From Macrostomum lignano (lineage: Eukaryota), in NCBI GenBank assembly GCA_002269645.1, contig NIVC01002670.1, positions 62,001 through 126,000 of the forward strand: 64,000 nucleotides of DNA, read 5' to 3'. The translations under genes were made by a program, and so were the position numbers. This document shows positions 1 through 63,403 of this stretch, piece by piece (position 1 is the stretch's first letter; every line of letters starts with the position of its first letter). The notes beneath the pieces are model-generated. The model had not been told where the DNA came from. It saw only the letters and a program-made list of their open reading frames with translations, and searched no databases.

Positions 1-899
1 ATTTTTAGCTTGATTTGTTACCCGGTCTGGTCCAGGCCTGTGGAATCAGGCTTAGCTTTAGTAAATTGCGCATGGTGTTTGGCCTTAGCTCTTCCCTTTC
101 TCACTTTACTGTTTGCCTATCTGGTTTCTGTTTGACCAAACAATCGTCTCTGTCGCAACACAAATCGCTTTTTGTCTTGTGTTTGTTTGTATTTTTGTTT
201 TCTTATTGTCTTCTTTTATTGCCGATACGGCTGCCATGACAAAGAAGGGCACTGTGTACTTTGCGGGAAGCTCTCGCTGCTCCCTCCACGTCACACGTAT
301 TGATCAAATTGTCACAGCTTTTTAATCTATAGAAACAGTTTTCCAGATTTTTCTGACAATCCGTGCTTTTTGTTGTGTCCATTTGCGTGCGCTGAGAGCT
401 GGGCAGAGGAGCTTTATTTAAACTGGCTTTTTGTAGTCCATGACTGATTCGACAGCCACGCTTCTTTTGGTTACTGGTTACTATGCGCTTCTCAGCCTGA
501 ATGTCTATTTCTGATTTATTAGGTGTCAGATTGTACTCTGCGTCGCTTGATAAAGTCTACAGTAGCCCAGCGACCATCAGCTTTCTATCGTTTCACTCAT
601 TTTTTCTATTTGGTCGAATTCTTGTTGCAGCATTTCTGCTATTATATTGCTACTGATCTGCTTTTTTGTTCTCTCGCTCTCGATTCTGTTAGCAACAGAT
701 ACCATTGAACTAGCTGATTGCACCTTTAGTACTGCGTGCCTACAGGTGACAAAATTAACATTATTCTTAATTATATATTATTCCCGGTTGAAAAAAATAC
801 TGGATTAGCCCATTGAAATTGGCCCGCTCATCGGCCACTTCGTGTCAGAAAAGCCCGCTCTAAAAGCCCGCTCATTTTTCCAAATCAACGAGTCTCTCA

Positions 900-1940
900 A
901 ATCGGCCCGTTCCACGGCCCGCTTCTGGGCCCGCTGGCTGGCCCGCTGGTTGGCCCGTTCTAAACCGGCCCGCTGGCTGGCCCGTTGTTTGGCCCGGTGG
1001 CTGGCCCGTTGGTTGGCCCGCTCACTGGCCCACTCATTGACCCGTTCTAAACCGGCCTACTGGCTGGCCCGCTGATTGGCCCCCTCATTGGCCCGTTCTA
1101 AACCGGCCCGCTGGTTGGCCCGTTGGTTGGCCCGCTGATTGGCCCGTTCTTAACCGGCCCGCTGGTTGGCCCGTTGGTTGGCCCGCTCATTGGCCCACTC
1201 ATTGACCCGTTGTAAACCGGCCTGCTGGCTGGCCCGCTCATTGGCCCGTTCTAAACCGGCCTACTGGCTGGCCCGCTGATTGGCCCCCTCATTGGCCCGT
1301 TCTAAACCGGCCCGCTGGTTGGCCCGTTGGTTGGCCCGCTGATTGGCCCGTTCTTAACCGGCCCGCTGGTTGGCCCGTTGGTTGGCCCGCTCATTGGCCC
1401 ACTCATTGACCCGTTGTAAACCGGCCTGCTGGCTGGCCCGCTCATTGGCCCGTTCTAAACCAGCCCGCTCATTGGCCCGTTCTAAACCGGCCCGCTCATT
1501 GGCCCGTTCTAAACCGGCCCGCTGGCTGGCCAGTTGGTTGGCCCGCTGGTTGGCCCGTTCTAAACCGGCCCGCTGGTTGGCCCGTTGGTTGGCCCGCTGG
1601 CTGGCCCGCTCACTGGCCCGTTCTAAACCGGCCCGCTGGCTGGCCCGTTGTTTGGCCCGGTGGCTGGCCCGTTGGTTGGCCCGCTCACTGGCCCACTCAT
1701 TGACCCGTTCTAAACCGGCCTGCTGGCTGGCCCGCTCATTGGCCCGTTCTAAACCAGCCCGCTGGCTGGCCCGTTGGTTGGCCCGCTGGTTGGCCCGTTC
1801 TAAACCGGCCCGCTGGTTGGCCCGTTGGTTGGCCCGCTGGTTGGCCCGCTCACTGGCCCACTCATTGACCCGTTGTAAACCGGCCTGCTGGCTGGCCCGC
1901 TCATTGGCCCGTTCTAAACCGGCCCGCTGGTTGGCCCGCT
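900..1940 (+). repeat. Left subterminal array of GGCCCG(C/T)T-core units (ggcccgctggtt / ggcccgttctaaacc)
   Basis: Dozens of 12-15 bp units, directly visible. ORFs 842-1075, 1354-1980 and 1370-1942 are read-throughs of this array. Confidence 0.95.
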
Positions 1941-2271
1941 GAACGAACAAAAAAAATAAGTAAAGAAGCAAAATAAGCATGAGATTTCTAAGTCAGACCG
2001 ATGAGCCGTACAATTAGCTTTTTTATAAAAACCGGGAATATACTTCATCGGATCTGGTAAAAACAAAGAGATGTTAAGGTTAAAATTGAATACTAGTATT
2101 TTTTCATGGTGGCACGAATAGCTAAAAGAGCTAATATAGCTAATAGAGCTATCTGAGCTAAAAGAGCTAATATATAAAAGAGCAACCCTAGCCTCAGAGT
2201 CTATTCTCAACCCAAAGTAATGTTTGTCAGCATAGTGAAAAATTGTCACCACAATCGAGGCCTAGTCTCTA

Positions 2272-4208
2272 CTACTCGCTTTCCTCTTCATTTTCTGCGC
2301 AGGCGCCACTTTTCGCAGACGAACTCTCCCGATCCCGTACGGTCCTGACTGTAGGGCGGAAGACCTCGCCGAGTTCGGCGTCTGTGAATAGTTTTTTGTC
2401 CTCCTCTGAGACCAGTTTACTGGCCAGGTAGGACCGTATGGCCGCCTTCTTGGAGCTATCCAGCTCAACCCGGTTGGCCGCTTTCTCTCCTTTCACCTGT
2501 CGACCAGCCCAAGATGCGGTTCGCAGGTCTTGCTCAGGGCACACAGCAAGTATGACTAGCCGAATGGCTCGTCTGCGAATCTTGTTATTGTTTGCGGCTT
2601 TTCGCATTTCAACTGCTGCGGCTTCCAATTTTGTCAGGGCCAACGGACAAACCGTGACACCGGGAAATGCAGCTATCAGCGGCACACGTTTCGACGACTG
2701 GTTGCCCATCATGGAGGTCGATATATTTGCGATTGCCGTCGCAATGGCGTGGCTCACAAATCCACTGGTAAGCTGCGATGACGTCGAGCCACTTGGCTCG
2801 GCATCGATGCCGATATCGGCAGCAGCTGATGACGACTCTCCGGGTGCAGTACTCGAACCAGCGACCAACGTTTCGTAGTCACTAATAGAGCGCACCAGAC
2901 TTTCGAGGTGGCTGCATGATTCTGTAGTTCTACGTGCCACCTCGTTGGCCGACCGCGCCTGCGCCGTGACGAACCGTAGCGTCTCAAGTATCTGAGAATT
3001 CGCATGCATGGAACTTGCAAGACGGGTGTCATACTTTTGCAGCACGTCATCTTTCTGTGCCAGTTCCTGTTTCAGCTGCTCATTCTCAGACCGAATGGCC
3101 TCATTCTCAATCTTCAGGTTGGCTGCATCAGTTTCAGCAGCCCCCCGCTTGTCCGTCTCTTCTCGATTTGCCTCACGTAGGTCACGACATTCGATGTCGA
3201 GGTTCCGGCAGCGCGGGCATCCGGCATCAGGGTGATTTATAACGGGTTGCACGCGCCTATAGGCGCCTGCAGAGCCCCACCCCATTAAAGTTGCCGATTT
3301 GGCCAGGTTGTCCCGGGCAGCGTAGGTGGACTTCCTATCCGGAAAAGGCCCGGCTGTCAGGAAAGCGTCGAAAGTTTTTGCACTCGGGCTATGGCCAGTC
3401 CGTACTTGTACTTTAACGCCGACTGTTCGTGTTACGGGGTCCGGGTCGACGATGCACTTTTGGTCGATGGCCATAACTTTGCCGGTGTTAGTGTACGTGA
3501 GCACCCACCAAATAGCTTTGTGGATGACCATGACACGGGGCGCCTTAGCCTTTGGTGGTCCACCGGCCCTATTGCGATGCCGCATCTCCTTTCTCGACTC
3601 TAGATCTGGCTCGCTCGATGAGTCAGATAGAGATTCGCGATGCCGATGCCTATCGGCATTGGCTTCGGCTTTCCGTTTTGTAGTAGAGCCGGTCGGCTCC
3701 GCGGACACGGCCGTGCTCATATCGGAGCCGATTAGCGCCGTTGAAGTGGCGTCGTGGGCTTTAGGGAGCGTCCTCACAATCGTCGCACTGCTCGATGGCG
3801 TCCAACGCCATTGGAGCGCCACTCCAATAGTCGTCATCTGGAGCTTCTTCGCCTGGTTCCTCAACGATAGATCTAGAAGATACGTCCTCATCGTCGTTGT
3901 CTGAATACTGCGAGCCGGTAGGCTCGACGACCATGGGAGTCTGGACGCCACTGCTACATCCACCTGTTGCCAATGCTGGCTGCCAGCTGCTGCCAACACT
4001 GGCTACACTGTTGCTTGTTTGCGCGTCATGAGTGGTTGGTACGTCATGAGTGGTCCGAGTTGCAGTTAGTAAATGGCTCACTGAAGCTTCTGCTCGTGTC
4101 GGACGGGCTGTCGCCGCAACTGTCTGTCTGAGTGATTCTTTGAGTCGACTGAAGCGCCGTGCGATGGCAACTGACTTCTTGTCGAGCTCTTTTAGTCGTT
4201 CAAGTGAC
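2272..4208 (-). CDS. Transposon-encoded coiled-coil protein with C-terminal BEN-like domain, split by a +1 frameshift at about 3763
   Basis: The ORF 3999-2272 has a CxxC motif, then a heptad coiled coil, then a C-terminal RRAIRLVILAVCPEQDLRTASWAG...ELDSSKKAAIRSYL...RDRE segment with BEN-domain-like spacing. An upstream acidic frame (4208-3761, preceded by a ttttcag acceptor) joins it by a +1 shift. The BEN call is pattern recognition, not a profile hit. Confidence 0.6.
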
Positions 4209-4616
4209 TGAAAATGAAGAAATTGAATACCTGTGTGACTAGGAGAGAATCCGTACTAAAATTGTTAATTAACAAATACCATCATTCTACTATCAGTTTG
4301 AATCAGTTTGCTATCTTAGCCCAAGAGCCAACAAAGGGCGAAGCAATGGTTTCACACTAAACTGGGTGATATCTGAAGTACATACGTCACAACGTAGCGC
4401 GATATACAAATTGCTGTGGGCGTATGAGGCGATAAAAATAAATAAAATTGACACACTTTTTGTACATGTCATCATGAAATTTGTGTATGCACAGTTTATT
4501 GGACAGCATTAGTGCTCTACAAATCAAATAATTGCCCGAGCGCCAAGACACCGCAAAAGTTTACACGTACAAGTTTATACACCATTTGATAAGATTATCA
4601 CGTTCACAACAAGTCA

Positions 4617-5340
4617 GCGGGCCGGTTTAGAACGGGTCAGTGAGCGGGCCAACCAGCGGGCCGTGCAGCGGGCCGGTTTAGACCATTGAGCGGGCCAACC
4701 AGCGGGCCGGTTTAGAACGGGCCAACCAGCGGGCCAACCAGCGGGCCAACCAGCGGGCCGGTTTAGAACGGGCCAACCAGCGGGCCAACCAGCGGGCCAA
4801 CTAGTGGGCCGAGCAGCGGGCCGGTTTAGATCGGGCCAGTGAGCGGGCCAACCAGCGGGCCGTGCAGCGGGCCGGTTTAGAACGGACCATTGAGCGGGCC
4901 AACCAGCGGGCCAACCAGCGGGCCGGTTTAGAACGGGCCAGTGAGCGGGCCAACTAGTGGGCCGAGCAGCTGGCCGGTTTAGAACGGACCATTGAGCGGG
5001 CCAACCAGCGGGCCAACCAGCGGGCCGGTTTAGAACGGGCCAACCAGCGGGCCAGTGAGCGGGCCAACTAGTGGGCCGAGCAGCTGGCCGGTTTAGAACG
5101 GACCATTGAGCGGGCCAACCAGCGGGCCAACCAGCGGGCCGGTTTAGAACGGGCCAACCAGCGGGCCAGTGAGCGGGCCAACTAGTGGGCCGAGCAGCTG
5201 GCCGGTTTAGAACGGGCCATTGAGCGGGCCAACCAACGGGCCAACCAGCGGGCCGGTTTAGAACGGGCCAACCAGCGGGCCAACCAGTGGGCCGCGCAGC
5301 GGGCCGGTTTAGAACGGGCCAGTGAGCGGGCCAACCAGCG
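4617..5340 (-). repeat. Right subterminal array, reverse complement of the left array
   Basis: Units cagcgggccaac / ggccggtttagaacgggcc are the inverse of the 900-1940 units. Confidence 0.95.
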
Positions 5341-6390
5341 GGCTAATCAGCGGGCCGATCTGCGGATCGGTTTCGAGCGGGCCATTAGCGGGCTAATCAG
5401 CGGGCTTCAGAGCAGGCCGGGTTTCAGCGGGCCAATTTGTTGTAAAAGGCCTGTAATACGGGCCGATTCGCTTCGGCCCGCTAATGGCCCGCTCAAAAGC
5501 CCACTGAGGCCCGCTAAGTTTTTCAACCGGGATTACTTACTAACATTATTAACACAGCAATACGATTTGTTATAAATAAAGGTCAGTCCAACCCTTGTAC
5601 AGCTTCCGCGTCGGTTCGTGCGCATCTGTTAATTTAGATTATTGCTTAACTGCATCATATGCTTCTTTATTGCACTAACTGTAGACTCAAAGCATCCCGA
5701 GGAGCTCACTGAGGCTGTTTCCAGCTGAAAAATAGGTACTGGAAAAAATAACATCAAAATCCTTACTTATTTACTACTGTTAGTAGCATGAATATTGTTA
5801 GAATCCAACATAGGCTTTTATTATTCACAGCCAGGGTGAAGCATACATGGCCTGTTTAATCGATAATTGTGTAATTGCTGAATTTTGATGTTTCACTGAT
5901 CACAGCCTGACTGTTTATCGAGTAAAAGAATGGCCGCCAAAACAATACTAAAATATAAAATTACACTATTAAATAATAGTCTAAGAGATTAGGACAAAGT
6001 ACATGAATAGTTTTCTTTTCGGACTGAGAATCGCTAATAACCGAGGCTGATTAGAATCTGAGATGGGGAACACAATTCGCAGTTTATTGTGATATATAGA
6101 AAAACAAAAAGCAACAAATAATTAAATTTGGCAATCCAGATCAATCAGCCTTGCCTTACAGATATAATAGCTAGCGGGAACAAATGCAATAAATAGCGGA
6201 TAATTTGGAGCAGTTTTGGATTCGGAATATCAATAATTTATTTTACAATCAGACAGCAAATTTATTAATTACATCGAAAACACCGAAAATACTACTGACT
6301 GAACGCTTGAGAGTAGCCTACGAGTATATAGCTTGAGTATAAAATTTAAATAATAATAAAAAATCGTTGCAAGACATGACTACAAGTTAA

Positions 6391-9300
6391 CTAACTGGCG
6401 GAGGCTGAGGTGGCAGCGGCCCGCATCTGGCGGAGGGTCTCGTGGCAGCGGGCGCAGACGCGCACCGGCTCCCGGTATTGTGGCGGCAGCGGGGCGCTGT
6501 GCGACGAGCACTCGGCGCAGAACACTTCGCCGCAGTTTCGGCAGTGATGCTGAAGCAATGTTGGCGGTATGAATATAACGAATAAGATGCTTTATAGTAC
6601 TTTTAAGTAGCATATAATAAATGGTCTGATGAACCTTCTGACTTTTCCGGATGAATTTCGGGCTATAGTGATGAGTGTACATTGGCTTCATTGTACGTGT
6701 TATCATTTACTTCGGCATCAGTGCTTGCTAGTCCACAGCTTGCACGCCATACTCATTTTGCCACGGGTCAGAGCGCGAGTCCTCACTCACAGCATTGTAA
6801 AAATAACAATCGCGCGCTCACCCGTCGCAGCGTGAGGCTGAACATCTTCTCGCACTTGCTGCACTGCTTGGCCTGGTCGTCGCGCACCCAGACCCGACTG
6901 CGGGTGGTCTCCTGCGACACCTGCAGCCGCTGATTGTCCCGGCCAATGTCCAGCAGCGCCGACTGCAGCTCCTCCAGTTGGCGCCGCTGCTCGGCTAGCT
7001 CCCGGTTGAGCCGGTCGCGCTCGTCAGCGTCCACTATGAGGCGCTCGGTGAGGCGGCGCTTCTCCTCGTCCAGCTCGTCCACTTGGCGCTCGCTCTCTGA
7101 ATAGTAATTACAGCTTGCTACTCGCGTGATGCTACTGGGGAGTAGTCAGACAGACTGGGAGGGTCTGTATTTCTACCGCAGCTCAGAGCTGCTGCCCAAA
7201 CACAGCAGGGCGAACTGCAGCTCAGAGCTGCTGCCCAATCACAGCAGGGCGAACTGCAGCTCAGAGCTGCTGCCCAATCACAGCAGGGCGAACTGCAGCT
7301 CAGCTTAATTTGTCACTCGCTCACTGCGGCTGAATTTAAAAGTGACGCAAGCTGTCTATTCAGCTGCATACAAACCCTATGTAGTCATGTAATGAAATCA
7401 TTACTATTGTGTCTGAGTCAGACAGACGAATAAGCCAGGTGGCAGGAACCTCACCCTTCTTAGCGACCTCAGCAGCCTCAGTCAGGCGCTGAATCTCCGC
7501 CCGCATTGACTCCGCCGCTTTGCCAGCCTCCGCCAGATCGGCCTCCGCAGTGGAGAGCCGCTCAGCTCCCTGCAGCTGCTCCGTCTCCTGCAGCAGTTAA
7601 TTGCAACAATGCAAAATGATAGAGATTAGCCAATCAGCAATCAGCTGGGCAGCCCGATTGCACTCACGCATTTCAGCCGCAGTTCTCTGAGCTCTGCATC
7701 TCGACCGTCCCGTTCAGCCTCTGTGGCAGCCAGCTGTTCAGCGAGTTTCGCCAGCTCGGCCGCTTTGATGTCAACCGATTCGCGCAGACTCCCTTCAGAC
7801 TGTTGCAGCGATTCGATGCTTGCCGACAGCTCTGACACTCGCTGCGGGTGTGGCCATTCCGATTGACCAATCAGAGAGATGCTAAAGGGAAGCCTCAATA
7901 ATCACTGACCAATCAGAGAGAAGCTAAAGGGAAGCCTCATTAATCACTGACCAATCAGAGAGAAGCTAAAGGGAAGCCTCATTAATCACTGACCAATCAG
8001 AGAGAAGCTAAAGGGAAGCCTCATTAATCACTGACCAATCAGAGAGAAGCTGAAGGCAAGCCTGCTAATCTCCCATGTACTAGCAAAGGCGCCCGCGGTT
8101 CACGTTACTCACCTGTTCAAGCTCCTCATGCCGAGCAGCCGCCAGATCCAGCTGCTCTCGCGACTGCGCCAACTCCGATGTCAGACGATCGTTGGCGGCA
8201 GATGTCTCGGCTAGCTTTGTTGTCAGAGAGTCCCTCTCCTGACAGGCTGTTGCCAACTCCTGACGAGTGCCAGTCAGCTCACTGGTCAGCGAGTCCCGCT
8301 CCTGACAGGCTGTCGCCAACTCCTGACGAGTGCCAGTCAGCTCACTAGTCAGCGAGTCCCGCTCCTGACAGGCTGTCGCCAACTCCTGACGAGTGCCAGT
8401 CAGCTCACTAGTCAGCGAGTCCCGCTCCTGACAGGCTGTCGCCAACTCCTGACGAGTGCCAGTCAGCTCACTAGTCAGCGAGTCCCGCTCCTGACAGGCT
8501 GTCGCCAACTCCTGACGAGTGCCAGTCAGCTCACTAGTCAGCGAGTCCCGCTCCTGACAGGCTGTCGCCAACTCCTGACGAGTGCCAGTCAGCTCACTAG
8601 TCAGCGATTCCCGCTCCTGACAGGCTGTCGCCAACTCCTGACGAGTGCCAGTCAGCTCACTAGTCAGCGAGTCCCGCTCCCGTTCGAGTCCCGCAACTTT
8701 CTTCTGCGCAGATGTCAGCTCCTCCGTCAGCGAGTCCCTTTGCTGACAGAGTTCATTAAACTCCCGACGCGAACTTTCTAGCTGCAATACAATCGAATCC
8801 CGCTCTGCACTGATTTTGTTGGCTTCCTCGCGAACCGAGGCAACATTTTCAGCTAGCGAGTCCCGCTCCTGCACCAGCTTATCCAAATCCGAGCGAGTGG
8901 CAGCTAAATCCGCTGTCAGCGAGTCCCGCTCCTGCACCAGCTTATCCAAATCCGAGCGAGTGGCAGCTAAATCCGCTGTCAGCGAGTCCCGCTCCTGCAC
9001 CAGCTTATCCAAATCCGAGCGAGTGGCAGCTAAATCCGCTGTCAGCGAGTCCCGCTCCTGCACCAGCTTATCCAAATCCGAGCGAGTGGCAGCTAAATCC
9101 GCTGTCAGCGAGTCCCGCTCCTGCACCAGCTTATCCAAATCCGAGCGAGCAGTCGTCAAGTCTGCTGTCAGCGAGTCCCGCTCCTGCACCAGCTTATCCA
9201 AATCTGAGCGAGCGGCAGCTAAATCCGCTGTCAGCGACTGGCGAGTTGCATTTAACTCAGTTGTCAGCGCGTTAATTTCTAAGCGCGCGCTGCTCAAATC

Positions 9301-12300
9301 GGCTGCTAGGGAGTCGCGCTGGCCTGAGAGGCTGTCTGCCCTCTGTCTGCCGGTCTCGGCTTCAGCGGCCGCATCCGCCAGACTGGCTTTCAATTCGGCC
9401 AGCTCTGCCTGCGGAATAAAATCACACAAGAGCGCTAATTACAAGCTCACACAGGGTGTACGCGGCCTTGACTTTCTATTCGTCAGACATGTACACCCTG
9501 TGCCTCGGGGGCTGGCAAGTTTGCGTGCACAAGCCCCAAATGAATGTGGCCGCGCAGGGGTCGTGGCGCGAGAGTCGGATGACCAACTTTGCTCCTTGCT
9601 AATTAGACTACTGACAGTAACAGTACTGAATTTGTTTCGTAATTTTGTAGTTCCTCGTATTCTTACCTCGTGCTTCTCGCGAGCGGCAGTTAGCGAGTGC
9701 TCCAATTTCTGAAGCTTCTTCTGCTGCTTGGCCATTGACTTGCTCTGCTCCTGCTCAAGGTGGACAAGTCAAGGTCAATACTATTGTTAACCGGAACTGA
9801 GCCCTGCTGTAATGCTGTACTAACCGCTCACCTGCTTTTCAGACTCCAGCTGGCTGGCGCTGCTCTTCAGCGCGTCCAGCTCCTCGGCCAGCCGGCCCTG
9901 CATCGACTCCGCCGTCTGGATCGTCTCAGTCGCATCGGCCAGTCGCCGCTCGGCCTGGTCGGCCCGATCTCTCTGGCCGGACACAGCGGAGCGAAGCTCT
10001 CCGCAGGAGGCCTCGGCCGCCGCTAGTCGCGTCCGCAGGTCCTCGGCCAAGCCGTCCAGCTCGCGCTCTCGACTGGCGGACTCGGCTGCCTCGGCAGCGG
10101 ACTCCGACTGCAGCCGATCGATTTTGTCGGCTAGCAGCCGCTCCAGGTCGCATTTTTCATTGTAGGCCGTCTGGCTGGCCGATAGCTGCTGGCGCACTTC
10201 GGACAGAGTCTGCAGGAGTAGCGGAGGCAAGAGTCTCACTATATGAGATCCTTGAGTCTCACTGAGATCCTTGAGTCTCACTATATGAGATCCTTGAGTC
10301 TCACTATATGAGATCCTTGAGTCTCACTATATGAGATCCTTGAGTCTCACTGAGATCCTTGAGTCTCACTATATGAGATCCTTGAGTCTCACTATATGAG
10401 ATCCTTGAGTCTCCACTTGAGACAACCTCACCTGTTGCAGCCGTTGCGTTTCCTCTTCGCGACTGGCCGCTGCATCGGCCGCCTCGCGTCTCAGCGCTTC
10501 GATTTGCGCCTCCGCCTCGGTGCGCGCGTCGCGCTCGGCGGCCGCCTCGGCCCGTCGGTTCGACAGCTCGTCGGATAGCTGGCGCTCGCGATCCTCGGCG
10601 GCGCGAGATGAAGCTTCCAGCTGCCGTTGAGATGGGATTATTTTAGAAAATTTAATACCAGTGGCTGTATTACTCATGGGTGCGATCTATCAGCTGCGTA
10701 CTAACCGCGGCCAAATCAGCTTAACTTTCAGGGCTGATTCTGGTTGAGTACTGAAAACAAATAATTTTTTCAGCTTCACTTCAACAGCCTAGTGGGGAAC
10801 GCAAAGTCTAGCGCAGGCATAGTTAGACAGTTGAAGCGCTAACCTGAGCCTGCAGTCCGTCAGCTTTCTGGCGCAGCTCAGTCAGCTCAGCGGTCAGCTT
10901 GGCGTGCTCCTGCTCCGACTGAGCTGCTTTCTCTCTGAGCAGTTGGCAGTTCTGTAGGTAAGAAATAGAAAATACGACTGTGGGTGTTTCTTACAGTTTC
11001 TAGGGCATCTAAGGGCATTACGCAAATCTAAGGAAATGACAATGACAACGCTAACCCGCATAGATTTGCCCAGCGTATCCATTGCCTCCTCCAAGCTGGC
11101 CTGCGTCCGAGCCGTCTCGGCCTCCGCGTCAGCTCTGGCCGACTCCGCCGACCTGGCGGCCTCCTTTGCCTCGGCCAGGCCGGCTTCAAGACTGGCCAGC
11201 TCGCTGCGCAGGCAGTCCGCCTGCTCCTCCAGGTTGGCCGCGATCGCCTCCCGCTCGGCTAGCAGGCGCGCAGTGGCCGCTTCGCGCTCTCGCGCCTGCT
11301 TAGCCCGCGCCGCCTCCGCCTCCGCCTCTGTCGCTGAATTGGCCGCCAGCTCGGCCGCCATTCGAGTCTCGGCTAGCTCAGCGGCCAGCGCCTCCCGAGC
11401 GGCCCGCTCGCTGGCCAATCTGGCGCGGGATTCGTCGCGCTGTCGCGCCAATTCGCGCTCCTGCGCCTGCGCCGCCGCCGTCAGCCTGGCGATCTCGTCG
11501 TCGCGCTGGCGCAGCCGCTGGGCCTCGGCGTGCCGCGACTCCTCGCGAATGGCCGCCGCCTGCCTGTCGAACTCCTGGCGCATCTCGCCGGCCTGCTGGC
11601 TGGCCCGCTCCTCTGTGGCCGACACGCGGCGTCTGGCGTCCTCAAGCTCGGCGCGCAGGCGACCAAGTTCTGAGTCTTTGCTGCGATAAGACGCAAATTT
11701 TGAGCACAGATATTTGAATATTTTATTTGAAAAACTAGTGTCTATGATGGCACTTTGATATCGAAAGACGAGATTTCGCGAGAAGCTGGCCGATGAGGTT
11801 TTAGGATCTACGATGGGATCTCTTAAGACAATAGGATTTGGGATTTAAGACAATAGGATTTGGGAATTTAAGACAATGGGATTTGGGGATTGAAGATAAT
11901 AGGATTTTGGGATCTAAGACAATGGGATTTGGGGATCTAAGACAATGGGATTTGGGGATCTAAGACAATGGGATTCAGGGATCTAAGACAATGGGATTTG
12001 GGAATTTAAGACAATGGGATTCGGGGATCTAAGACAATGGGATTCGGGATCTAAGACAATGGGATTCGGATATGTTTCAATGAAATTTCGGGATCCAAGT
12101 CGATACAACAATTTGTCATCTAAGACGCTGCGAGCTCGGTTTCTAAGATGATGAATATCTTAAGATCTTAATTGAGGTTTAGAGCTTCTCCAAAACCCCC
12201 ATGTGCATGTACTCGTAAGTGTATTAGGATCCCCCACATGGCAACAGACGCCGAGAAGTCCTGTACCTGGCCAAGATGTCGCGGGACTCGGCCTCCTTGG

Positions 12301-15300
12301 CGGTGGCGGCCTCGGCGGCGGCCAGCTCCACAGCTGCCAGCCGGTGCTGCAGTTCGGCGCGCAGCTCCTCGATTCGCGCCTCGGCCGCCTGTTCAGCCGA
12401 GCGCTGATTGGCCGCGCTGTCATCCTGCAGCTGCCGGCGGAGCTGCTGGAGCTCCGCGTCTTTCCTGGGAGAGGATGGGCGGGCTTTTGAAATCCTATCT
12501 GGGGGATAATTGGGTTCAGAATCCCATCTGTGGATTATAGGGTTCGAAATCGCATCTGGAGGATTATAGGGCTCAGAATCCTATCTGGGGGATTATAGGG
12601 TTCAGAATCCCATCTGGGGAATTATAGGGCTCAGAATCCCATCTGGGGGATTATAGGGTTCATAATCCCATCTGGGGGATTATAGCTGGGTTCAGAATCC
12701 CATCTGGGGATTGTAAGGTTCGAAATCGCATCTAGAGGATTATAGGGCTCAGAATCCCATCTGGGGGATTATAGGGTTCAAAATCCCATCTAGGGATTAT
12801 TGGGTTCAGAATCCCATCTGGGGGATTATAGCTGGGTTCAGAATCCCATCTGGGGATTATAGGGCTCGAAATCGCATCTGGGGGATTATAGGGCTCAGAA
12901 TTCCATCTCAGAATCCCATCTGGGGATTATAGGGTTCAGAATCCCATCTGGGGATTATAGGGTTCAGAATCCCATCTGGGGGATTATAGGGTTCAGAATC
13001 CCATCTAGGGATTATAGGGTTCAGAATCCCATCTGGGAGATTATAGGGTTCAGAATCCCATCTGGGGATTATAGGGTTCAGAATCCTATCTGGGGGATTA
13101 AGTTTCAAAATCGTATCTGTGGATTACTGTGGTAGATTCCCTACAGACTCAATACCAATAGGCAGTCAAACACTGAGAGTCTCACTGCTGCCGCAGCTCC
13201 TGCAGTTTGGTCTCCATATCGGTGGCCAGAGATTTGCGCAGCTCCTGCAGTTTTCTAGCCGACTCGATGCCAGCATCTTCTAATCGGGTCTGCAGCTCTG
13301 CGCTGGCCTGCTTCAGCTCTTGAACCTGCTGACGGTGCCTGCATGTCGTTGTTTAAATATTTCGGGTTTTTTCCAGTTTCTTAGAAAGTGGATTCATCCT
13401 CAGCGCAGAAATCGCATGAGAAAATGTCTCACTTTTGACTGGCATTCTTAGCTCTGAGCTCGATGGCCTGTTTCTCCTCGGTTAGGGCTTTCACGGCTCG
13501 CTCGGACTCGCTAAATTGATGGGTTGAAATTACATAAGACTAATTAAATAAAATAAGAAACTAATAAAATAAAATAACGCTTACTCTGCCTTAGCTTGCA
13601 ACTCAGAGCGCAGCGATTCAATCTCTTTGTCGCGACTGAAAGCGGCAGTTTAAAAATAGACACAAGTATAACAGAGGCGACACTTTATTAACTATAGTAA
13701 ATGGATAACTATCGTATGAACTACCGTTTGATTTCACTGTCAGCCTTTTGTTGGCTGCTCTGCTTTTCCGACATCAGATTCTTCAGGGCTTCATCAGCGG
13801 ACCTGCAATATTTTGAACATTTACGCCGCATGAAGGCTGAAGTTTGTTGAATAGCCAAGTTTTGCTGCGTAGCAAAGTAAGAATAGATGCGGGAGGGAGT
13901 CTGGGTGAGAGGTGGGGGAAGGAGGGTGACAGGTGAGAGAGAAGGAAAGGCAGATATAGAGTGGGAGAGGAAAGCTCCTTTCGAGGAGAGGGAGACGGGG
14001 AGGTGAGAAGAAGAGAGAAGGAGAGAAAGAGGGGAGACGTAGAGGGAGGGGAAGGAGAGAGAGAGGGAGAAGAGAGGAAGGGGAGTGGGAGAGGTAGATG
14101 GAGAGGGAGGAGGGGTAGAGGTAAAGGAATAGGGAGGGGAGAGGGAGTGAGAGGGTGAGAGGTAGGAGGAGAGGTAGAGGGAGGGTGAGAGGTAGGTGGA
14201 GAGGGAGGAGGAGAGGTAGAGGGAGGGTGAGAGGTAGATGGAGAGGGAGGAGGAGAGGTAGAGGGAGGGTGAGAGGTAGATGGAGAGATAGGAGGAGAGG
14301 TAGAGGGAGGGTGAGAGGTAGATGGAGAGGGAGGAGGAGAGGTAGAGGGAGGGTGAGAGGTAGATGAGAGGTAGGAGGAGAGGTAGAGGGAGGGTGAGAG
14401 GTAGATGGAGAGGGAGGAGGGGTAGAGGTAAAGGAATAGGGAGGGGAGAGGCAGAGGGAGGGTGAGAGGTAGATGGAGAGGGAGGAGGAGAGGTAGGGGA
14501 GGGTGAGAGGTAGATGGAGAGGGGGGAGGGTGAGAGGTAGATGGAGAGGGAGGAGGGGTAGAGGTAAAGGAATAGGGAGGGGAGAGGCAGAGGGAGAGGG
14601 AGTGGGAGGGTGAGAGGTAGATGGAGAGATAGGAGGAGAGGTAGAGGGGGAGGGGATGATGGAGCAGAAGAATCGAAAGGACAGAAGAGAGGTAAGAAGC
14701 GAGGTGGACAGTGCAGCATGGCAGCGCAGCATGTCAGTGCAGCACTTCTCTTACCCAGACTTGGATTGCAACTCAGTGGTGAGCGATTCGATTTGTTCCT
14801 CTTTCCTGCAAATAAACAGCGCACAAAGATTTCCGATTAGCTAAAATAAAAGAAAGTCAGTGAAATTTATCTACTCATCAAACCTTTGAATTTCTTCGTC
14901 GGCGATTCTCTCCGACTCAAGCTTCTCAGCGGCCAGTTGTTTCAGGGACTGCTCGGCGGCGCTGTAAAATAGGGCGATGAAAGTAATTAAAGCTTACCTT
15001 CAATAATAATTAGGCATGCAATAAAAATAATCCTTCTGTACACTTCAATGAAATCCGCACTCACTCGAGCTTGGCCAGCAGCTTTTGTTTCAACTTTTCG
15101 ATCGCTTGGTCTTTTCTGAAAAGAAAAAAGTACACGAAAAACTTTGATTGCTTGCATTAGTGAGAACATTTTTAAGAAAGCATAAAGCCACGTCGCATCA
15201 AACAGACTTATCACTGGTTTCTTTGAGCCGCTTCTCTAACGCTTGCTTCTCGTCAGAAAGTGTTTTCAAGGCTTTGTCAGCAGAGCTGAAATATAAGTAG

Positions 15301-18300
15301 GGTAATTTTATATAATAAAGCCCCGATACTAGTGTCTTCACAAGTGGCGCTAAAACTGGTGTCTTCACAAGTGGCGCTAAAACTGATGTCTTCACAAGTG
15401 GCGCTATAACTGGTGTCTTCACAAGTGGCGCTAAAACTAGTGTCTTCAAGTGGCGCTAAAACTAGTGTCTTCAAGTGGCGCTAAAACTAGTGTCTTCAAG
15501 TGGCGCTAAAACTAGTGTCTTCAAGTGGCGCCAAAACTAGTGTCTTCAAGTGGCGCTAAAACTAGTGTCTTCAAGTGGCGCCAAAACTAGTGTCTTCAAG
15601 TGGCGCCAAAACTAGTGTCTTCAAGTGGCGCTAAAACTAGTGCCTTAAACTCTTTAAGCAGTACTTACTCAGACTTCGATTTGAACTCCGCTCTAAGCGC
15701 CTCAATAGTCTGTTGTGCACTGAAAAGGAGGTCGAACTGAAACCAATGTAAAATTAGCATAATCAAAATTGAAAAGTTGAAATTCCAAAAAAGCCAGTCG
15801 GTACCGCTGTTTCTCAGCCTCGGCTGCAGATTCAATCGATTGCTTGCTCTCAGTCAGACTGCTTAGAGCATGTTCGGCTGAGCTGAAATGAAAAGATGAT
15901 ATCAATTTGAAATGCATTGTTTTAAGTAAGTTAATAAATATACTAATAGTTACACTGTACTCATTCATGCTCACTTTAATTTCGATTGCAGCTCAGCATT
16001 TTTCTTCGCCAACTCCTGGTCACGTCTGCAATATTAAAGTGATTATTTTCTCATAAAACTAAGCGTGAACAGATAAAAGAAAATTCAATATCACGGTTTC
16101 AAAACAGTACTTTGTAGAATCCTCTTGTAATTTCTCTAGTGCCAGTCGCTCAGTGGCCAGACTCCGTTGCGCTTCATCTGCGCAGCTGAAAGTAAATTAG
16201 TTTATTAATTTTTACATCGGCATGTAGCTATGCATAGCAATTTTAGATATATTTAGATAGCTTGAAATTGAGTGGATCACGGGTAGGGGAAACTTGGAGA
16301 GATTAGATCACAGGTAGGAGATACCTGGAGAGATTAGATCACAGGTAGGAGATACCTGGAGAGATTAGATCACAGGTAAGGAATACATAGAAAGATTAGT
16401 TCACAGGTAGGGATTCCTGGAGAGATTAGATCACAGTTAGGAGATACCTGGAGAGATTAGATCACAGGTAAGGAATACATAGAAAGATTAGTTCACAGGT
16501 AGGGATTCCTGGAGAGATTAGATCACAGGTAGGAGATACCTGGAGAGATTAGATCACAGGTAAGGAATACATAGAAAGATTAGTTCACAGGTAGGGATTC
16601 CTGGAGAGATTAGATCACAGTTAGGAGATACCTGGAGAGATTAGATCACAGGTAAGGAATACATAGAAAGATTAGTTCACAGGTAGGGATTCCTGGAGAG
16701 ATTAGATCACAGTTAGGAGATACCTGGAGAGATTAGATCACATGTAAGGAATACATAAAAAGATTAGATCACAGGTAGGGATTCCTGGAGAGATTAGATC
16801 ACAGGTAGGGGACACCTGGGAGTGAGTGGATCAGGTGGGGCACAAGTAAAATTATTGAAAAAGTTTGGCATGCTATTGAATATTGTTGAGTCCTACTTTG
16901 ATTTCAACTGTAGATCCGCTCTAACAGCATGCAATTGTTCGTGATGTCTGAAAAAAAAACAAGATAAAAATGAACAGCATAGTTGATCAAGTAGGCTTAG
17001 GCTTAACTATCTCCCCAACTGACACCGCGACTTGCCTCTGCCGCTCGTCCGCCAGAGAGCACTCAAGCGACTGTTTCTGTTCGGTTAAGCACTGGATCTC
17101 CTGTGCGGCAGTACTAAAATTAGCATAACTTAACTATGAAAAAGATTATAGCGATGTGAAGTGTACACAATTTACTAAGGTTTTTGGCTGAACTCACTCT
17201 GAAGAGGACTGAATCTCGGCCTTAAGGGTAACAATAATTTGATCCTTTCTAAAAATGTGTTTTAGTTTGCGGGTGCGAGAAATAACAATAACAGTGAGTG
17301 TGGGTGTGAAAGACTGCCGGTGAAAGAGTGACAGTGAGTGTGGGTGTGAAAGACTGCCAGTGAAAGAGTGACAGTGAGTGTGAAAGAGTGACAGTGAGTG
17401 TGAGTGTGAAAGACTGCCGGTGAAAGAGTGACAGTGAGTGTGGGTGTGAAAGACTGCCGGTGAAAGAGTGACAGTGAGTGTGAAAGAGTGACAGTGAGTG
17501 TGGGTGTGGAAGACTGCCAGTGAAAGAGTGACAGTGAGTGTGGGTGTGAAAGAGTGACAGTGAGTGTGGGTGTGAAAGACTGCCGGTGAAAGAGTGACAG
17601 TGAGTGTGGGTGTGAAAGAGTGACAGTGAGTGTGGGTGTGGAAGAGTGACAGTGAGTGTGGGTGTGAAAGAGTGACAGTGAGTGTGGGTGTGAAAGACTG
17701 CCGGTGAAAGAGTGACAGTGAGTGTGGGTGTGAAAGACTGCCAGTGAAAGAGTGACAGTGAGTGTGGGTGTGAAAGACTGCCAGTGAAAGAGTGACAGTG
17801 AGTGTGGGTGTGAAAGACTGCCGGTGAAAGAGTGACAGTGAGTGTGGGTGTGAAAGACTGCCGGTGAAAGAGTGACAGTGAGTGTGGGTGTGAAAGACTG
17901 CCAGTGAAAGAGTGACAGTGAGTGTGGGTGTGAAAGACTGCCAGTGAAAGGCCAGTGAAAGAGTGACAGTGAGTGTGGGTGTGAAAGACTGCCAGTGAAA
18001 GAGTGACAGTGAGTGTGGGTGTGAAAGACTGCCAGTGAAAGAGTGACAGTGAGTGTGGGTGTGAAAGAGTGACAGTGAGTGTGGGTGTGAAAGAGTGACA
18101 GTGAGTGTGGGTGTGAAAGACTGCCGGTGAAAGAGTGACAGTGAGTGTGGGTGTGGAAGACTGCCAGTGAAAGAGTGACAGTGAGTGTGGGTGTGAAAGA
18201 CTGCCGGTGAAAGAGTGACAGTGAGTGTGGGTGTGGAAGACTGCCAGTGAAAGAGTGACAGTGAGTGTGGGTGTGAAAGACTGCCAGTGAAAGAGTGACA

Positions 18301-20941
18301 GTGAGTGTGGGTGTGAAAGAGTGACAGTGAGTGTGGGTGTGAAAGAGTGACAGTGAGTGTGGGTGTGAAAGAGTGACAGTGAGTGTGGGTGTGAAAGAGT
18401 GACAGTGAGTGTGGGTGTGAAAGAGTGACAGTGAGTGTGGGTGTGAAAGAGTGACAGTGAGTGTGGGTGTGAAAGACTGCCGGTGAAAGAGTGACAGTGA
18501 GTGTGGGTGTGAAAGAGTGACAGTGAGTGTGGGTGTGGAAGACTGCGGGTGAAAGAGTGACAGTGACTGTGAATGCGAGAGTGAATATACAACACACAGC
18601 AGGAGTAGAAATACACCGCCATAGCTCACTCAATCAGTTTTTCATTCAACTCGGCCAAAGCGGCTGCGGCAGCTTTAGATTCATCATCCGCCTTATCCTG
18701 TTTATCAGTAGCGTCCAGCTTCACTCCCGTCCTGATGAAGTCACTAGTCAGATCGGGCGGTATCTCAATGTCAGCGAAACTTGCCAACCCGTTGCTGGTA
18801 GCAGCGGCTGACTCGGCAGTGTTGGACTAGGAGATATTGCAGGGAAGGCCGGCCAGTTACTATAGTTACTACATGTATATGCCTGGCATTACTGAATAGT
18901 CAATAGTCTAGGTCTGAAGGCTAATTTAACCCATCGGCTGTCTTTAAAGAGTTAAGTGTAGTGACACTGTAGTGTCAGTGTCACTGTAGTGTCACACGCT
19001 GTGATCTCTATCTTCTCTCTCTCTCTGCCCTGACGAAGAGTAAGTAACTGGAAATATCGAGAACTGTAACTTTATAGACTTTTATTAGTCTTTTTACCGT
19101 GTCAGAGTCTAAGATTGGAGGTGCCCTCCTCCCCCCTCTCTCTAACTTGCTTTCCCTTTTTCTGTCAATGCCTATGTCTATGGGCAAGACCAAATCTACT
19201 GCCAGCAAATGGGAAGTCTCAACTTGGCTGACAAAAGCAATACTTGAAAACACATGGATTGCTAATCTGAGCATGCTATTGCCATACACAAAATACCTCA
19301 GCCAAGTCCTGAACCTGCTGCAGCAGCTCCGCTCTAAGCTGCTCAATAGTGTCGCACAATGCGCGCTCCTTCTGGCTGAATTCTTCTACTAAGACTTGCT
19401 TCTCTTGGCTGGCCGCTGTCAGTTGCTCGTCAAGCTGCTGAGCCACTGGATAAAAATCAACCAAGAAGCAATATAAATAAACAATAAACAATTGGACAAT
19501 ATAAATAAAAAAGTTTTAAAAAAGCAACAAATGACAGACTTAATAAAAGACTTACTCAGAGTTTTACTTTCATTAGAAGCCATCAATTGCTGTTCAAGCA
19601 AGAATATCTCCTCTGAGGCCTGGGGTAGGTTTTATTAATTATAAAATTGAGTTCACAAATTATATCACATTAATGTAGTTGTCAGCAAGGCACTCACGTG
19701 ACTGTTGTTGGCCGCAGCGGATCCCGCGCTGGCCAGCCGCTGGTTGAGCTCCGCATTCTCCAATCGCAACTGTTGGACAGTCTTAACTAGTTCGGCCACG
19801 CTCTCTGCTTTGTTGGCCTGCTGCTGGTTCAGTGTGCGGTCGAACCTGCATTAGCGTCAGAAGCATTGATTCGTTGGTGAAATAGGTAAGCCTCTTCTGT
19901 GTGTAAATGTTGAAATCCACTGTTTTTAACTCCTACCCCCAGCGACACTAACCTCACACCCCACTGTTATATTCCTACCCCCTGCGACACACCTCACGCC
20001 CCAGTGTCCTTTCCTATCCTTTGCGAGACACCCACCTCACGCCCACTGTTATATTCCTACCCCCTGCGAGGCACCTCACGCCCCAGTGTTCTTTCCTATC
20101 CTTTGCGAGACACCCACCTCACGCCCCAGTGTTATATTCTTACCCCCTGCGAGACACCCACCTCACGCCCCAGTGTTATATTCCTACCCCCTGCGAGACA
20201 CCCACCTCACGCCCCAGTGTTATATTCCTACCCCCTGCGAGACACCCACCTCACGCCCCAGTGTTATATTCCTACCCCCTGCGAGACACACACCTCACGC
20301 CCCAGTGTTATATTCCTACCCCCTGCGAGACACACACCTCACGCCCCAGTGTTATATTCCTACCCCTGCGAGACACCCACCTCACGCCCCAGTGTTATAT
20401 TCCTACCCCCTGCGAGACACCCACCTCACGCCCCAGTGTTATATTCCTACCCCTGCGAGACACCCACCTCACGCCCCAGTGTTATATTCCTACCCCCTGC
20501 GAGGCACTCACCTCACGCCCCCAGTGTTATATTCCTACACCCCTGCGAGGCACCGCCACGCTTTATTATTGAATTCAACAGACATTTTTAGCCTTAGACA
20601 GAATGCAAAAGCTACAAAAGCTTCTACTAACATAACGTTAGCCTCGGCAGTGACCAACGCCGGCACAGAATTTCCAATTGCAGCAGTTGAAGGCGAAGCG
20701 GTAACGGCTGGCTGTTCCGGCTCGCCAGCCGAATGCGCGGCGGCAAAGTGATGTGTGAGAGCCTCGGCCGTGCCGAACTTAATTATACAGGTGGGACAGA
20801 CAAATCCTTCAACCTGCGACGACACGGTGCTGGCCCCGAGGAGTTGCCGGAGGCCCTCTGCGCGCCAGCATCGTTGCCGGCGGAACTGCCACTTCCGGCC
20901 TGCGATTTAGGCTTGGCCTTTTTTAACAAGTTGGACAGCAT
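6391..20941 (-). CDS. EEA1: Early endosome antigen 1-like tether (N-terminal C2H2 finger, long coiled coil, C-terminal FYVE), about 30 exons
   Basis: ATG at 20941 (MLSNLLKK...). C2H2 finger [43 protein letters not shown]...LRR|[15 protein letters not shown]...VRVCARC is split by a GT-AG intron (exon ends 6822, next exon 6549-6391, TAG). The intervening exons encode coiled coil in consistent phase. There is one 1-bp frameshift near 20835. Confidence 0.9.
7186..7305. repeat. Intronic 39-bp tandem repeat (about 3 copies)
   Basis: cagctcagagctgctgcccaatcacagcagggcgaactg units. Confidence 0.9.
7862..8067. repeat. Intronic 42-bp tandem repeat (about 5 copies)
   Basis: tgaccaatcagagagaagctaaagggaagcctcattaatcac units. 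Confidence 0.9.
8230..9240 (-). repeat. Coding 63-nt (21-aa) tandem repeats inside EEA1 exon 9408-8113
   Basis: About 6 x [21 protein letters not shown] and 7 x [21 protein letters not shown]. Confidence 0.95.
10232..10413. repeat. Intronic 23-bp tandem repeat filling almost the whole intron
   Basis: tgagatccttgagtctcactata units. Confidence 0.9.
11824..12070. repeat. Intronic about 23-bp tandem repeat
   Basis: aagacaatgggatttggggatct units. Confidence 0.9.
12490..13100. repeat. Intronic 28-29-bp tandem repeat
   Basis: agaatcccatctggggattatagggttc units. Confidence 0.95.
13900..14660. repeat. Intronic polypurine (G/A) tract with about 42-bp subrepeats
   Basis: Nearly pure G/A with gagggagggtgagaggtagatggagagggaggaggagaggta units. 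Source of the spurious Pro/Ser/Leu ORFs. Confidence 0.9.
15328..15645. repeat. Intronic 25-28-bp tandem repeat
   Basis: aagtggcgctaaaactagtgtcttc units. Confidence 0.9.
16290..16820. repeat. Intronic 31-bp tandem repeat with two alternating variants
   Basis: ggagagattagatcacaggtaggagatacct and agaaagattagttcacaggtagggattcct variants. Confidence 0.9.
17293..18570. repeat. Intronic composite minisatellite (26-bp + 14-bp units)
   Basis: agagtgacagtgagtgtgggtgtgaa mixed with agactgcc(a/g)gtgaa. Confidence 0.95.
19935..20550. repeat. Intronic 43-44-bp tandem repeat
   Basis: tgcgagacacccacctcacgccccagtgttatattcctaccccc units. Confidence 0.95.
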
Positions 20942-24156: not shown

Positions 24157-25459
24157 TCAAAGGTCATTGTTTATTTCAACATCGCCGCCGCCCTCGCTTC
24201 GATGAATCTTGGCGTGCTTGGCAAGACCTGAACAGTCGTAGAAGGCTTTGCCGCAGTCGCTGCACTCGAAAGGCCGTTCGCCAGTGTGCAGGCGCATATG
24301 CATGCGCAGGTAGTCTTTGCGAACGAATCGTTTAGCGCATACTAAGCAGACGTGCGGCTTCTTGCCCGTATGGTTGCGCATGTGACGCGCCAGGGCCGAG
24401 TTGTAGGAGAATCGCTGGCCGCAGCGGTTGCAGGAGAATGGCTTGACGCCGACGCCGCTGCTGGTGCCGATGCTCAAGCCGCTGACAGAGTTGGCTGCCA
24501 AGGACTGAGCGAGTCGCCGCTGGCGCTGCAGCGGATCCAACGGACGAGAAAGTGGCGGAGGTGGAGGCCGCGGCGGTGGCGACGGCGGCGGAGGTGACGG
24601 TGGCGACAGAGGCGGCAACAGAAGCTGCTGCGGAGGCGGAGGCGGTGACGGGGGAAGCTCGGGAGGCGGATGGGCGACAGCGGCGTGCCTGGCCAGGGAG
24701 GCCTCGTCGCGGAATCGCTTGCCACAATTTGGACAGGGCAGAAATCTTGGCGGCGGCAATGCCGAAGCGAGCGCATGCTGGCGCTGATGCTGCTGCTGCT
24801 GCCCCAGGCTGCCTCCAGCGGCTGCCGAGGAGTGCTTCTTCTGGTGCGCTTTCAGGTGTTCGCGGCGAGGAAAGCGCCGATCGCACAGGCTGCAGGCGTA
24901 AGGCATTTCGCCCGTGTGACTGCGCCGATGCCGGACCAGGCTGGACCTGGCCGTGAAGGTTTTGCCGCACTCGTTGCAGGTCAGGTGCTGCTGGCGCCGG
25001 CGCCCGAGGATGACAGCGCGCGGAGACTGCGGCATTTGCAACGGAGGCGGCGGCGGCGGAGGCGGTGATGGCGGTGGCATTGGCTGATGCTGCCGCGACA
25101 GTGACGGCGGCCGCTGGCCCTCTAGAAGCGGAGGCGGAGAAAGCGAAGGCTGCGGAGGCGGCGGCGGTGAAGCCGGACAATGCAGAGTCGACTGTTGCTG
25201 CTGCTGCTGCTGCTGTTGTTTTCGTTGTTGTTGTTGCTGTTGCTGCTGCAAGAGGCTGTCGTCTCCGTTGACGGCGAGCAGCTGGACCTCCAGCTCGGCC
25301 GCGGAGTCGGCGCACATCTCTAGGAAGCCCAGTCTGAGGCAGGGATCGTCGTCAAAGTCGCTGTTAGCCCAGGTGTTCCAGCACCCGATGCCCAGGCAAC
25401 GGAGACGTCGCCGTTGCCATCGCTGTCGCCGTTGCTATTAGCTGAATTGCCGTTGCCAT
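24157..25459 (-). CDS. C2H2 zinc-finger protein with poly-Q and poly-P tracts (six fingers in 2+1+3 clusters)
   Basis: ORF 25317-24157 has CNECGKTF...HRRSHTGEMPYACSLC, CPNCGKRF...H and KPFSCNRC...HTGKKPHVC...HTGERPFECSDC. An upstream Kozak ATG at 25459 joins in frame if one base of the G run at 25391-25393 is removed. Confidence 0.85.
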
Positions 25460-33040: not shown

Positions 33041-39943
<6,903 letters not shown>

Positions 39944-47800: not shown

Positions 47801-47945
47801 CTTCGATCAGCTTCACCCAGAAGCTGGACGTGCTGAGCGCTTCGAAACGGAGCTCGCAGAAATCGTCCAGCTGGACGGTCTGGCCGCCCTCCGGCTCGGG
47901 CTCGACTTCAGGGACCTCCTCTGCGTCGGCGGCCGTGTCAGTCAT
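44890..47945 (-). CDS. CLP1: Polyribonucleotide 5'-hydroxyl kinase Clp1 (3 exons: 47945-47497, 46221-45888, 45414-44890)
   Basis: ELRFE...GKAEVFGTEL, P-loop GPKDAGKTS, DVDVGQSQISVPGTMGA, VINTCGW and PVYGFCVV. Splice phases are consistent. Confidence 0.95.
45440..45850. repeat. Intronic 28-bp tandem repeat
   Basis: ttgggagtgctaatccctcagtcacaca units. Confidence 0.9.
46365..47325. repeat. Intronic 31-bp tandem repeat
   Basis: ctctctatgcctctcagtctactgtgtctac units. Confidence 0.95.
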
Positions 47946-63290: not shown

Positions 63291-63403
63291 ATAGATCAAT
63301 TAGATGAAATTAGATGAGATAAAATAGGTAAGATTAGATGAGTTGACGAGATAGATAAATAGCTCGTAGGAATGATGAATGAGTTTGATTGAATGGATCA
63401 ACT

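Follow-up and report, generated by a model that had tools for sequence, protein, structure and literature searches.

A candidate foldback-type transposon with inverted GGCCCG arrays and an orphan cargo gene in an animal genome

We describe a 4749-bp (~4.7 kb) segment at positions 783-5531 of a 64-kb stretch of Macrostomum lignano DNA (contig NIVC01002670.1, positions 62,001 to 126,000; the whole stretch is referred to as the window, and all coordinates are those of the window), which we interpret, with a probability of roughly 0.6, as one insertion of a foldback-type transposon of class II, i.e. a cut-and-paste element with terminal inverted repeats (TIRs), in an animal genome. This interpretation, drawn from the sequence, is carried by short perfect TIRs that abut a 3-bp direct repeat, by long tandem-repeat arrays that are inverted with respect to each other, and by a unique middle domain that encloses a single gene. 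Set apart from the known groups by their descriptions, the segment reads as a new family within a structural class already known, seen here as one copy. As it stands, it is a single unclassified transposon copy, probably non-autonomous, and would be ordinary for an animal genome. If the family is mobile, a foldback element with a 3-bp duplication and CCC...GGG ends would join a class that is found mostly in the Mutator and P superfamilies, and would support a repeated origin of the foldback architecture.

Ends of the element and the insertion site

The element is delimited by a perfect 13-bp TIR, CCCGGTTGAAAAA, which is located at 783-795 on the plus strand and at 5519-5531 on the minus strand, so that the termini read 5'-CCC...GGG-3' (CCCGG...CCGGG). 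A preliminary description of this DNA had reported 13-bp TIRs starting with CCC, and CCCGGTTGAAAAA is indeed found exactly at the two ends: the window contains exactly two perfect matches to it, and both are ends of the element. Further CCCGGTTGAAAAA-like matches in the window have two mismatches each, lie off the element ends and are at chance level, hence the search for additional termini, which the same description had proposed, returned within the 64 kb only the two ends already known. On either flank the TIR is directly followed by ATT, read from the sequence at 780-782 and 5532-5534; the 3-bp target-site duplication (TSD) claimed earlier is thus present as a flanking repeat, which we regard as supportive, not decisive, evidence of a TSD in this single copy. 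The inverted repeat stops at 13 bp and the direct repeat at 3 bp, and neither of them can be extended.

The immediate context of the insertion is TATT on the left and ATTA on the right, without TTAA. The left and right flanks exhibit no relatedness to each other or to the element, and the sequences of the element do not recur anywhere else in the 64 kb, both of which one would expect if the element had been inserted into unique DNA. The surrounding DNA is AT-rich and non-coding; a minus-strand gene coding for a coiled-coil/FYVE protein ends nearby, and the element is located about 860 bp downstream of its stop codon. The empty site expected from the flanks would have TTATATATT joined directly to ACTTACTAAC.

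The inverted arrays

From the outside inward, each arm comprises the TIR, about 100 bp of unique subterminal DNA with a few degenerate copies of the repeat core, and a long array. The left array (~899-1941, plus strand) extends over ~1.04 kb and comprises ~82 units of 12 or 15 bp, as determined by Tandem Repeats Finder (TRF), unit parsing and motif positions. The right array (4615 to ~5440, minus strand), inverted with respect to the left one, comprises ~60 units of the same two lengths; it is regular over 0.74 kb (4615-5357) and degenerate from there onward to ~5440. These sizes agree with the inverted GGCCCG arrays of about 1.0 and 0.7 kb noted before. The core of the unit is GGCCCG(C/T)T, which points in opposite directions in the left and the right arm; the 12-bp unit is GGCCCGCTGGTT (the commonest one in the element) and its variants, while the 15-bp unit is GGCCCGTTCTAAACC. 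The motif TTGGCCCGYT occurs 58 times, always within the element, compared to 0.28 occurrences expected, and is absent from the other 59 kb of the window. The two arms are complementary at the level of 83-90% along stretches of 130-250 nt.

Superimposed on the basic unit are higher-order repeats of 51, 63, 114, 165 and ~204 bp, the last exemplified in the left array by the segments 1053-1251 and 1257-1455. According to TRF, the match level is 87% for the 114-bp repeat and 66% for the 12-bp unit; the arrays, previously called homogeneous, are therefore homogeneous at the level of the higher-order repeat and not at that of the 12-bp unit. Recent insertion had also been proposed, and what speaks for it is the intact 13-bp TIR together with the 3-bp repeat, and only these, because the homogeneity of the arrays reflects their turnover and not the age of the insertion.

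The left subterminal unique domain (796-898, plus strand), which corresponds to the "flanking" domain of foldback elements, contains scattered degenerate cores: AGCCCAT, GGCCCGCT and two copies of AGCCCGCT. It does not align past the TIR with its right counterpart (5441-5518, minus strand), where the three outermost cores, at 5476, 5487 and 5509, are reversed with respect to the array. They are the only reversed cores in an otherwise almost purely direct orientation within each arm, and they render the two ends of the element asymmetric.

We propose that a DDE-type transposase, whose gene would lie at another place in the genome, inserted the element and made 3-bp staggered cuts in doing so. 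The arrays would then represent multimerised protein-binding sites, by analogy with the THAP sites in Galileo, and they may have been enlarged by unequal exchange, as the higher-order repeats indicate. The protein bound to them could be the transposase that is missing here, through its DNA-binding part, or else the cargo product, two options between which the present data do not discriminate.

No related sequence emerged when viral and metagenome contigs were scanned for the array unit. A looser version of the array pattern retrieved the metagenome contig Ga0222714_10014555 (L001), in which positions 3589-3700 contain nine tandem copies of GGCCCGCTGGTT, with CCCGGTTG located 40 nt away. We rejected this match as a coincidence, because the repeat encodes (TSGP)n within a 470-aa (amino acid) open reading frame (ORF) of an unrelated contig. 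A parvovirus-like or other hairpin-ended viral genome, considered in view of the size and the inverted ends of the element, was rejected as well, as neither a replication nor a capsid domain is present. Nothing was found in Rfam and tRNA scans.

The cargo gene

The middle domain, enclosed by the arrays, consists of 2.67 kb of unique sequence and contains one minus-strand gene. The single central gene announced by the preliminary description is thus there, but it is split into two overlapping frames, ORF1 and ORF2. ORF2 (2272-3720, minus strand) codes for 482 aa from its first ATG at 3720, and its frame is open from 3999 to 2272, i.e. for 575 codons, which in DNA of 53% GC is not a matter of chance. 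From the N- to the C-terminus, its product comprises a basic N-terminus, a β-rich region, a coiled coil, a Ser-rich linker, a helical C-terminal region and an acidic tail. The ORF1 exon (3761-4207, minus strand) codes for 148 aa (roughly 150) followed by a stop codon (TAA at 3763-3761); its product begins with a helix, continues in a long stretch of low complexity and ends in an acidic tail.

The two frames overlap in the region 3761-3999, and a +1 shift is required to pass from ORF1 into ORF2. Codon-usage scoring prefers the frame of ORF1 down to ~3790 and that of ORF2 thereafter, which places the switch at ~3790-3760, adjoining the stop codon of ORF1. A surplus C in the CCC run at 3766-3764 would explain the break, and in its absence there would be one ORF of ~646 aa. 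The cargo is accordingly either a single frame of ~646 aa that a 1-nt frameshift near 3765 has interrupted, or a pair of cistrons, and the overlap may have originated by a frameshift mutation, by a homopolymer error in the assembly or as a true two-cistron layout. An intron linking ORF1 to ORF2 was considered and rejected, as the region 3761-3999 contains neither an AT-rich stretch nor a plausible GT...AG pair of length 3n+1.

Upstream of ORF1 we infer a short first exon and a 72-nt intron: the sequence ATGATG at 4285-4280 precedes a putative AT-rich intron (4208-4279, minus strand), which was read from the sequence as GTATTT...TTTTCAG and in which TTTTCAG makes a good acceptor. The unique AT-rich region upstream of the gene (4286-4614, minus strand) would include its promoter and 5' untranslated region. 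At the other end, the 3' flank of the gene (1942-2271, minus strand) includes a 9/18-bp AGCTAAAAG tandem repeat at 2118-2183. It also includes the 8-mer AACCGGGA at 2030-2037, about 90 bp inside of the left array, which reproduces the final 7 nt of the right terminus together with the first base of the flank. With ~0.08 such occurrences expected by chance in the middle domain, coincidence is the probable explanation for the 8-mer; alternatively, an internal end could have left it behind as a relic.

The GC content at third codon positions (GC3) amounts to 0.57 in ORF2 and 0.39 in the upstream 69 codons of ORF1 (4207-4000), compared to 0.68-0.75 in six host exons of the window. This low GC3 weakly favours a gene borne by the element over a typical host gene, and we consider the former more likely.

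The cargo protein

In Pfam searches with the ORFs of the element we found no BEN, Myb/SANT, THAP or transposase family, and the only matches of ORF2 were sub-threshold ones to coiled coils in the middle of the ORF. A search of PDB sequences with the cargo protein gave no matches. Homologues of ORF2 were found neither in a word-indexed search of 5.8 billion clusters nor in an exhaustive HMMER search of 1.84 billion representatives, and no record of its exact sequence was encountered either; overall, no homologue of the cargo protein was detected among ~15 billion proteins searched. The protein libraries do contain animal proteins, since an exon of the neighbouring two-pore channel gene retrieves molluscan, vertebrate, cestode and bryozoan TPC2 at 28-46% identity. 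These matches bear out the earlier assignment of the host to animals, and they show that its near relatives are absent from the libraries. The genome of the host itself is probably absent from those protein collections, because an exact look-up of a neighbouring zinc-finger ORF yielded no record either.

The cargo had been described as a coiled-coil/BEN-like protein, and a BEN search and structure prediction for its C-terminus had been suggested. The coiled coil is present in the only long ORF of the element, while the BEN domain was rejected at the sequence level. The Pfam BEN family (PF10523) matches neither the whole ORF nor its last 143 aa at E<=10, and a phmmer search of the PDB with the C-terminal 143 aa detected no BEN domain at E<=10, even though the library includes the BEN chains of BEND6, Insv, BANP, BEND3, Bsg25A and NAC1 as positive controls. 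A custom hidden Markov model (HMM) built from four solved BEN domains scored the C-terminus at -0.9 bits, a value that 1480 of 3000 shuffled sequences equalled or surpassed, and hhalign assigned a BEN relationship a probability of 0.1%. For the last 172 aa, single-sequence AlphaFold (AF2) prediction gave a weak model with a predicted local distance difference test score (pLDDT) of 56, rising to 70-80 in the core helices; a Foldseek search of the PDB and BFVD with this model found nothing significant and no BEN chain, yet the model is too weak to exclude a BEN fold, which is a helical bundle with a long α3-α4 loop. The model of the N-terminal region of ORF2, with a pLDDT of 38, is unusable.

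To the eye, there is a resemblance between the C-terminus and the BEN pattern. In Insv and BEND5/6, a coiled coil is followed by a C-terminal helical region of ~100 aa, and the cargo protein likewise exhibits a coiled coil and then a C-terminal helical region. However, it differs from all the BEN proteins considered (Insv, Elba/Bsg25A, BEND3/5/6, BANP, NAC1) in lacking any detectable similarity to them in sequence, profile or structure. BEN domains are themselves mutually very divergent, to the extent that Insv matches BEND6 only with E = 0.004 and does not retrieve BANP, and because of this divergence the negative sequence result is not proof of absence. Literature searches revealed no BEN-carrying TIR transposon.

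Comparison with known transposons

The element exhibits the anatomy of the foldback class, which is structural and polyphyletic: arms of inverted tandem repeats surround a middle domain, and the termini and the TSD are well defined in the one copy seen (13-bp TIR, ATT/ATT). The TSD is 9 bp long in FB and 7 bp in Galileo. In Tetris, it amounts to 8-10 bp (PMC4079207). Foldback elements have been described as built of three domains (flanking, tandem-repeat and middle), and this architecture probably arose independently in several superfamilies when the transposase was lost and the arms grew; the majority of foldback families are members of Mutator, with exceptions in the P superfamily, and the arm repeats can hold extra transposase-binding sites, such as the THAP sites in Galileo (PMC4079207). 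Our element shares with FB, Tetris and Galileo of Drosophila, Tm1 of Meloidogyne, TU of sea urchins and TFB1 of Chironomus the short unique terminal domain, the long inverted tandem-repeat arms and the variable middle domain. Copies of those elements are also often non-autonomous, and their arm repeats have been proposed to multiply protein-binding sites (PMC4079207). However, the foldback families with known TSDs generate duplications of 7-10 bp and belong to the Mutator or P superfamilies, while the duplication here is only 3 bp; in addition, the unit is only 12/15 bp long, and the middle domain contains an intact-looking orphan gene that does not code for a transposase.

The element had been characterized as both CMC- and foldback-like. 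While the foldback-type TIR anatomy stands, the CMC part does not agree with the CCC...GGG termini, and only the length of the TSD fits. The En/Spm elements of the CMC group (En/Spm CACTA, Chapaev, Mirage) possess a 13-bp TIR and a 3-bp TSD. Our element resembles them in both lengths, and the ATT repeat fits the TSD of 2-4 bp (typically 3 bp) of CMC elements, which is not specific to that group. Plant CACTA elements require an intact CACTA motif and have subterminal repeat (subTIR) units of 10-20 bp, with direct and inverted copies mixed (PMC8978399), and the termini of Chapaev and other CMC elements are an invariable 5'-CAC...GTG-3' (PMC4079192). The 12/15-bp units fall within this size range, and autonomous CMC copies also hold a second ORF that does not code for the transposase (PMC8978399, PMC4079192). 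On the other hand, the termini are CCC...GGG and not CAC(TA)...GTG, no CMC-type DDE transposase is found in the element or in the window ORFs tested, and the arrays are far longer (0.8-1.0 kb) and nearly uniform in orientation in each arm, apart from the three reversed cores by the right end.

PIF/Harbinger elements combine a 3-bp TSD with TIRs of 25-50 bp and code for a DDE transposase as well as for a Myb-like protein, an accessory DNA-binding protein that binds the ends of the element and recruits the transposase; the accessory proteins of such two-ORF transposons diverge fast (PMC9179366). The length of the TSD is shared with our element, and the accessory-protein scheme is the closest working model for a cargo that would bind its own arrays. 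However, the TIR is only 13 bp long here, and neither a Myb/SANT/MADF domain nor a DDE_Tnp_4-type transposase is present. The usual target of Harbinger is TWA. Our element is flanked by ATT instead. Elements of the piggyBac superfamily have 13-bp TIRs that start with 5'-CCC and end with GGG-3', and they duplicate TTAA. The similarity to our element is confined to these termini, as there is no TTAA at its flanks and no piggyBac transposase. Duplications of 3 bp are generated by Zator and Academ, too.

No transposase domain was detected in the ORFs of the element by Pfam, nor a DDE domain in the other window ORFs tested, in line with the earlier characterization of the element as transposase-less. 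For this reason the copy is probably non-autonomous, unless the orphan protein is a new enzyme.

Several points weigh against a foldback-type insertion. Only a single copy is seen in the 64-kb window, and neither a second insertion flanked by another triplet nor an empty site nor an autonomous partner accompanies it there. The ATT duplication is only modest evidence, because by our own estimate a 3-bp match in an AT-rich flank arises by chance with a probability of ~0.04 (~4%). Moreover, the ends match neither the CAC...GTG of CMC nor the 25-50 bp TIRs reported for Harbinger, and the element cannot be assigned to a superfamily.

Possible roles of the cargo gene

It is conceivable, but in our opinion unlikely, that the cargo is an element-encoded, sequence-specific DNA-binding factor of an unrecognised fold, which would coat the ~140 GGCCCG(C/T)T sites of the arms and recruit or block a transposase supplied in trans. 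As an accessory factor that recruits the transposase to the arrays it would, whatever its fold, be an analogue of TnpA of En/Spm or of the Myb-like protein of Harbinger; this is what is left, in functional terms, of the earlier proposal once its BEN and CMC designations are dropped. Such a role agrees with the cargo being the only gene retained between the arms, with its codon usage, unlike that of the host exons, and with the combination of a basic N-terminus, a possibly dimerising coiled coil and a helical C-terminal region; the missing homologues would fit the fast divergence of accessory proteins in two-ORF transposons (PMC9179366). However, none of the methods detected a DNA-binding domain, the gene is possibly frameshifted in this copy, and an accessory gene without its own transposase has no obvious route to persistence. 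If this role were true, the element would represent an animal two-component foldback system, analogous to those involving TnpA or the Harbinger Myb-like protein and unrelated in sequence to both. If the orphan protein binds the arrays, it would form with them a compact natural pairing of one protein and ~140 clustered sites, useful for studying how accessory proteins build or silence transposition complexes.

The cargo might also derive from a host gene, or a piece of one, that was captured by transduplication as in Pack-MULE or Pack-CACTA elements and plays no part in transposition, a possibility that appears doubtful. The putative spliceosomal intron and the gene's own upstream region would be explained by capture, the middle domains of foldback elements are variable in content (PMC4079207), and the frame break could signal a decaying passenger. 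On the other hand, the window contains no paralogue of the gene and the protein libraries no animal homologue, and its GC3 is below that of all six host exons tested.

Even less can be said for a non-autonomous CMC (En/Spm-Chapaev-like) element whose BEN-domain cargo binds the GGCCCG arrays in the way TnpA binds the subterminal repeats of En/Spm, which we consider improbable. In its favour, the lengths of the TIR and the TSD equal those of En/Spm, the order of a coiled coil and a C-terminal helical region recalls BEND5/6 and Insv, and the order of helices in the weak model is not incompatible with the BEN fold. The size of the subterminal units is also inside the 10-20 bp of CACTA subTIRs (PMC8978399). 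However, the BEN domain failed in Pfam, in the PDB sequence search, in the custom HMM with shuffles, in hhalign and in Foldseek; the CCC...GGG termini contradict the invariable CAC...GTG (PMC4079192), and the almost purely direct arms the mixed orientations of CACTA subTIRs (PMC8978399); and no CMC transposase was found in the element or the window ORFs tested.

An autonomous element, with the orphan protein as a new kind of transposase or recombinase, is very improbable: the cargo is the only gene, its size would be plausible with the frames joined (~646 aa) and it has no known relatives, but the searches revealed neither a catalytic domain nor a catalytic motif, a large part of the protein consists of coiled coil or low-complexity sequence, and structure prediction yielded no confident fold. 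In the non-mobile alternative, inverted blocks of a local satellite would flank a host gene by accident, with the TIR and ATT as by-products of an inverted duplication; it is likewise very improbable, since the presence of one copy only in a window very rich in other tandem repeats is outweighed by a perfect 13-bp inverted repeat situated outside the arrays, in otherwise dissimilar subterminal sequence, and abutting a direct 3-bp repeat, as well as by the absence of the motif from the other 59 kb.

Genomic neighbourhood

The host gene near the insertion (6391-11625, minus strand, with its stop at 6391) codes for a very long repetitive coiled-coil protein that ends with a FYVE-like zinc finger (...RVCARCH) and includes near-perfect tandem peptide repeats, e.g. 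in the exon 8080-9429. Further minus-strand host genes at 24157-25317, 26197-27057, 33041-33976 and 47493-47990 correspond, respectively, to a proline/glutamine-rich C2H2 zinc-finger protein, a tRNA (uracil-5)-methyltransferase-like exon, the two-pore channel 2 exon, for which the best matches to animal TPC2 exhibit 35-46% identity, and a Clp1-like N-terminal exon. The low identities of these neighbouring genes suggest a fast-evolving or poorly sampled animal lineage.

Close to the right end of the window, the region 61062-63199 contains broken reverse-transcriptase fragments on both strands and in several frames, with weak matches to RVT_1 (E = 1e-4 and 2e-3); this is a degraded non-LTR (long terminal repeat) retrotransposon. 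The window also includes unusually many long tandem or low-complexity arrays (13721-14824, 17194-18633, 20004-20751, 27070-28149, 34097-34633, 46095-47444, 51324-52187 and 63334-63951), none of which has the GGCCCG unit; they show up as repetitive ORFs that are open in several frames. Strong GC skew marks the regions at 14-18 kb (+0.4) and 50-52 kb (-0.63).

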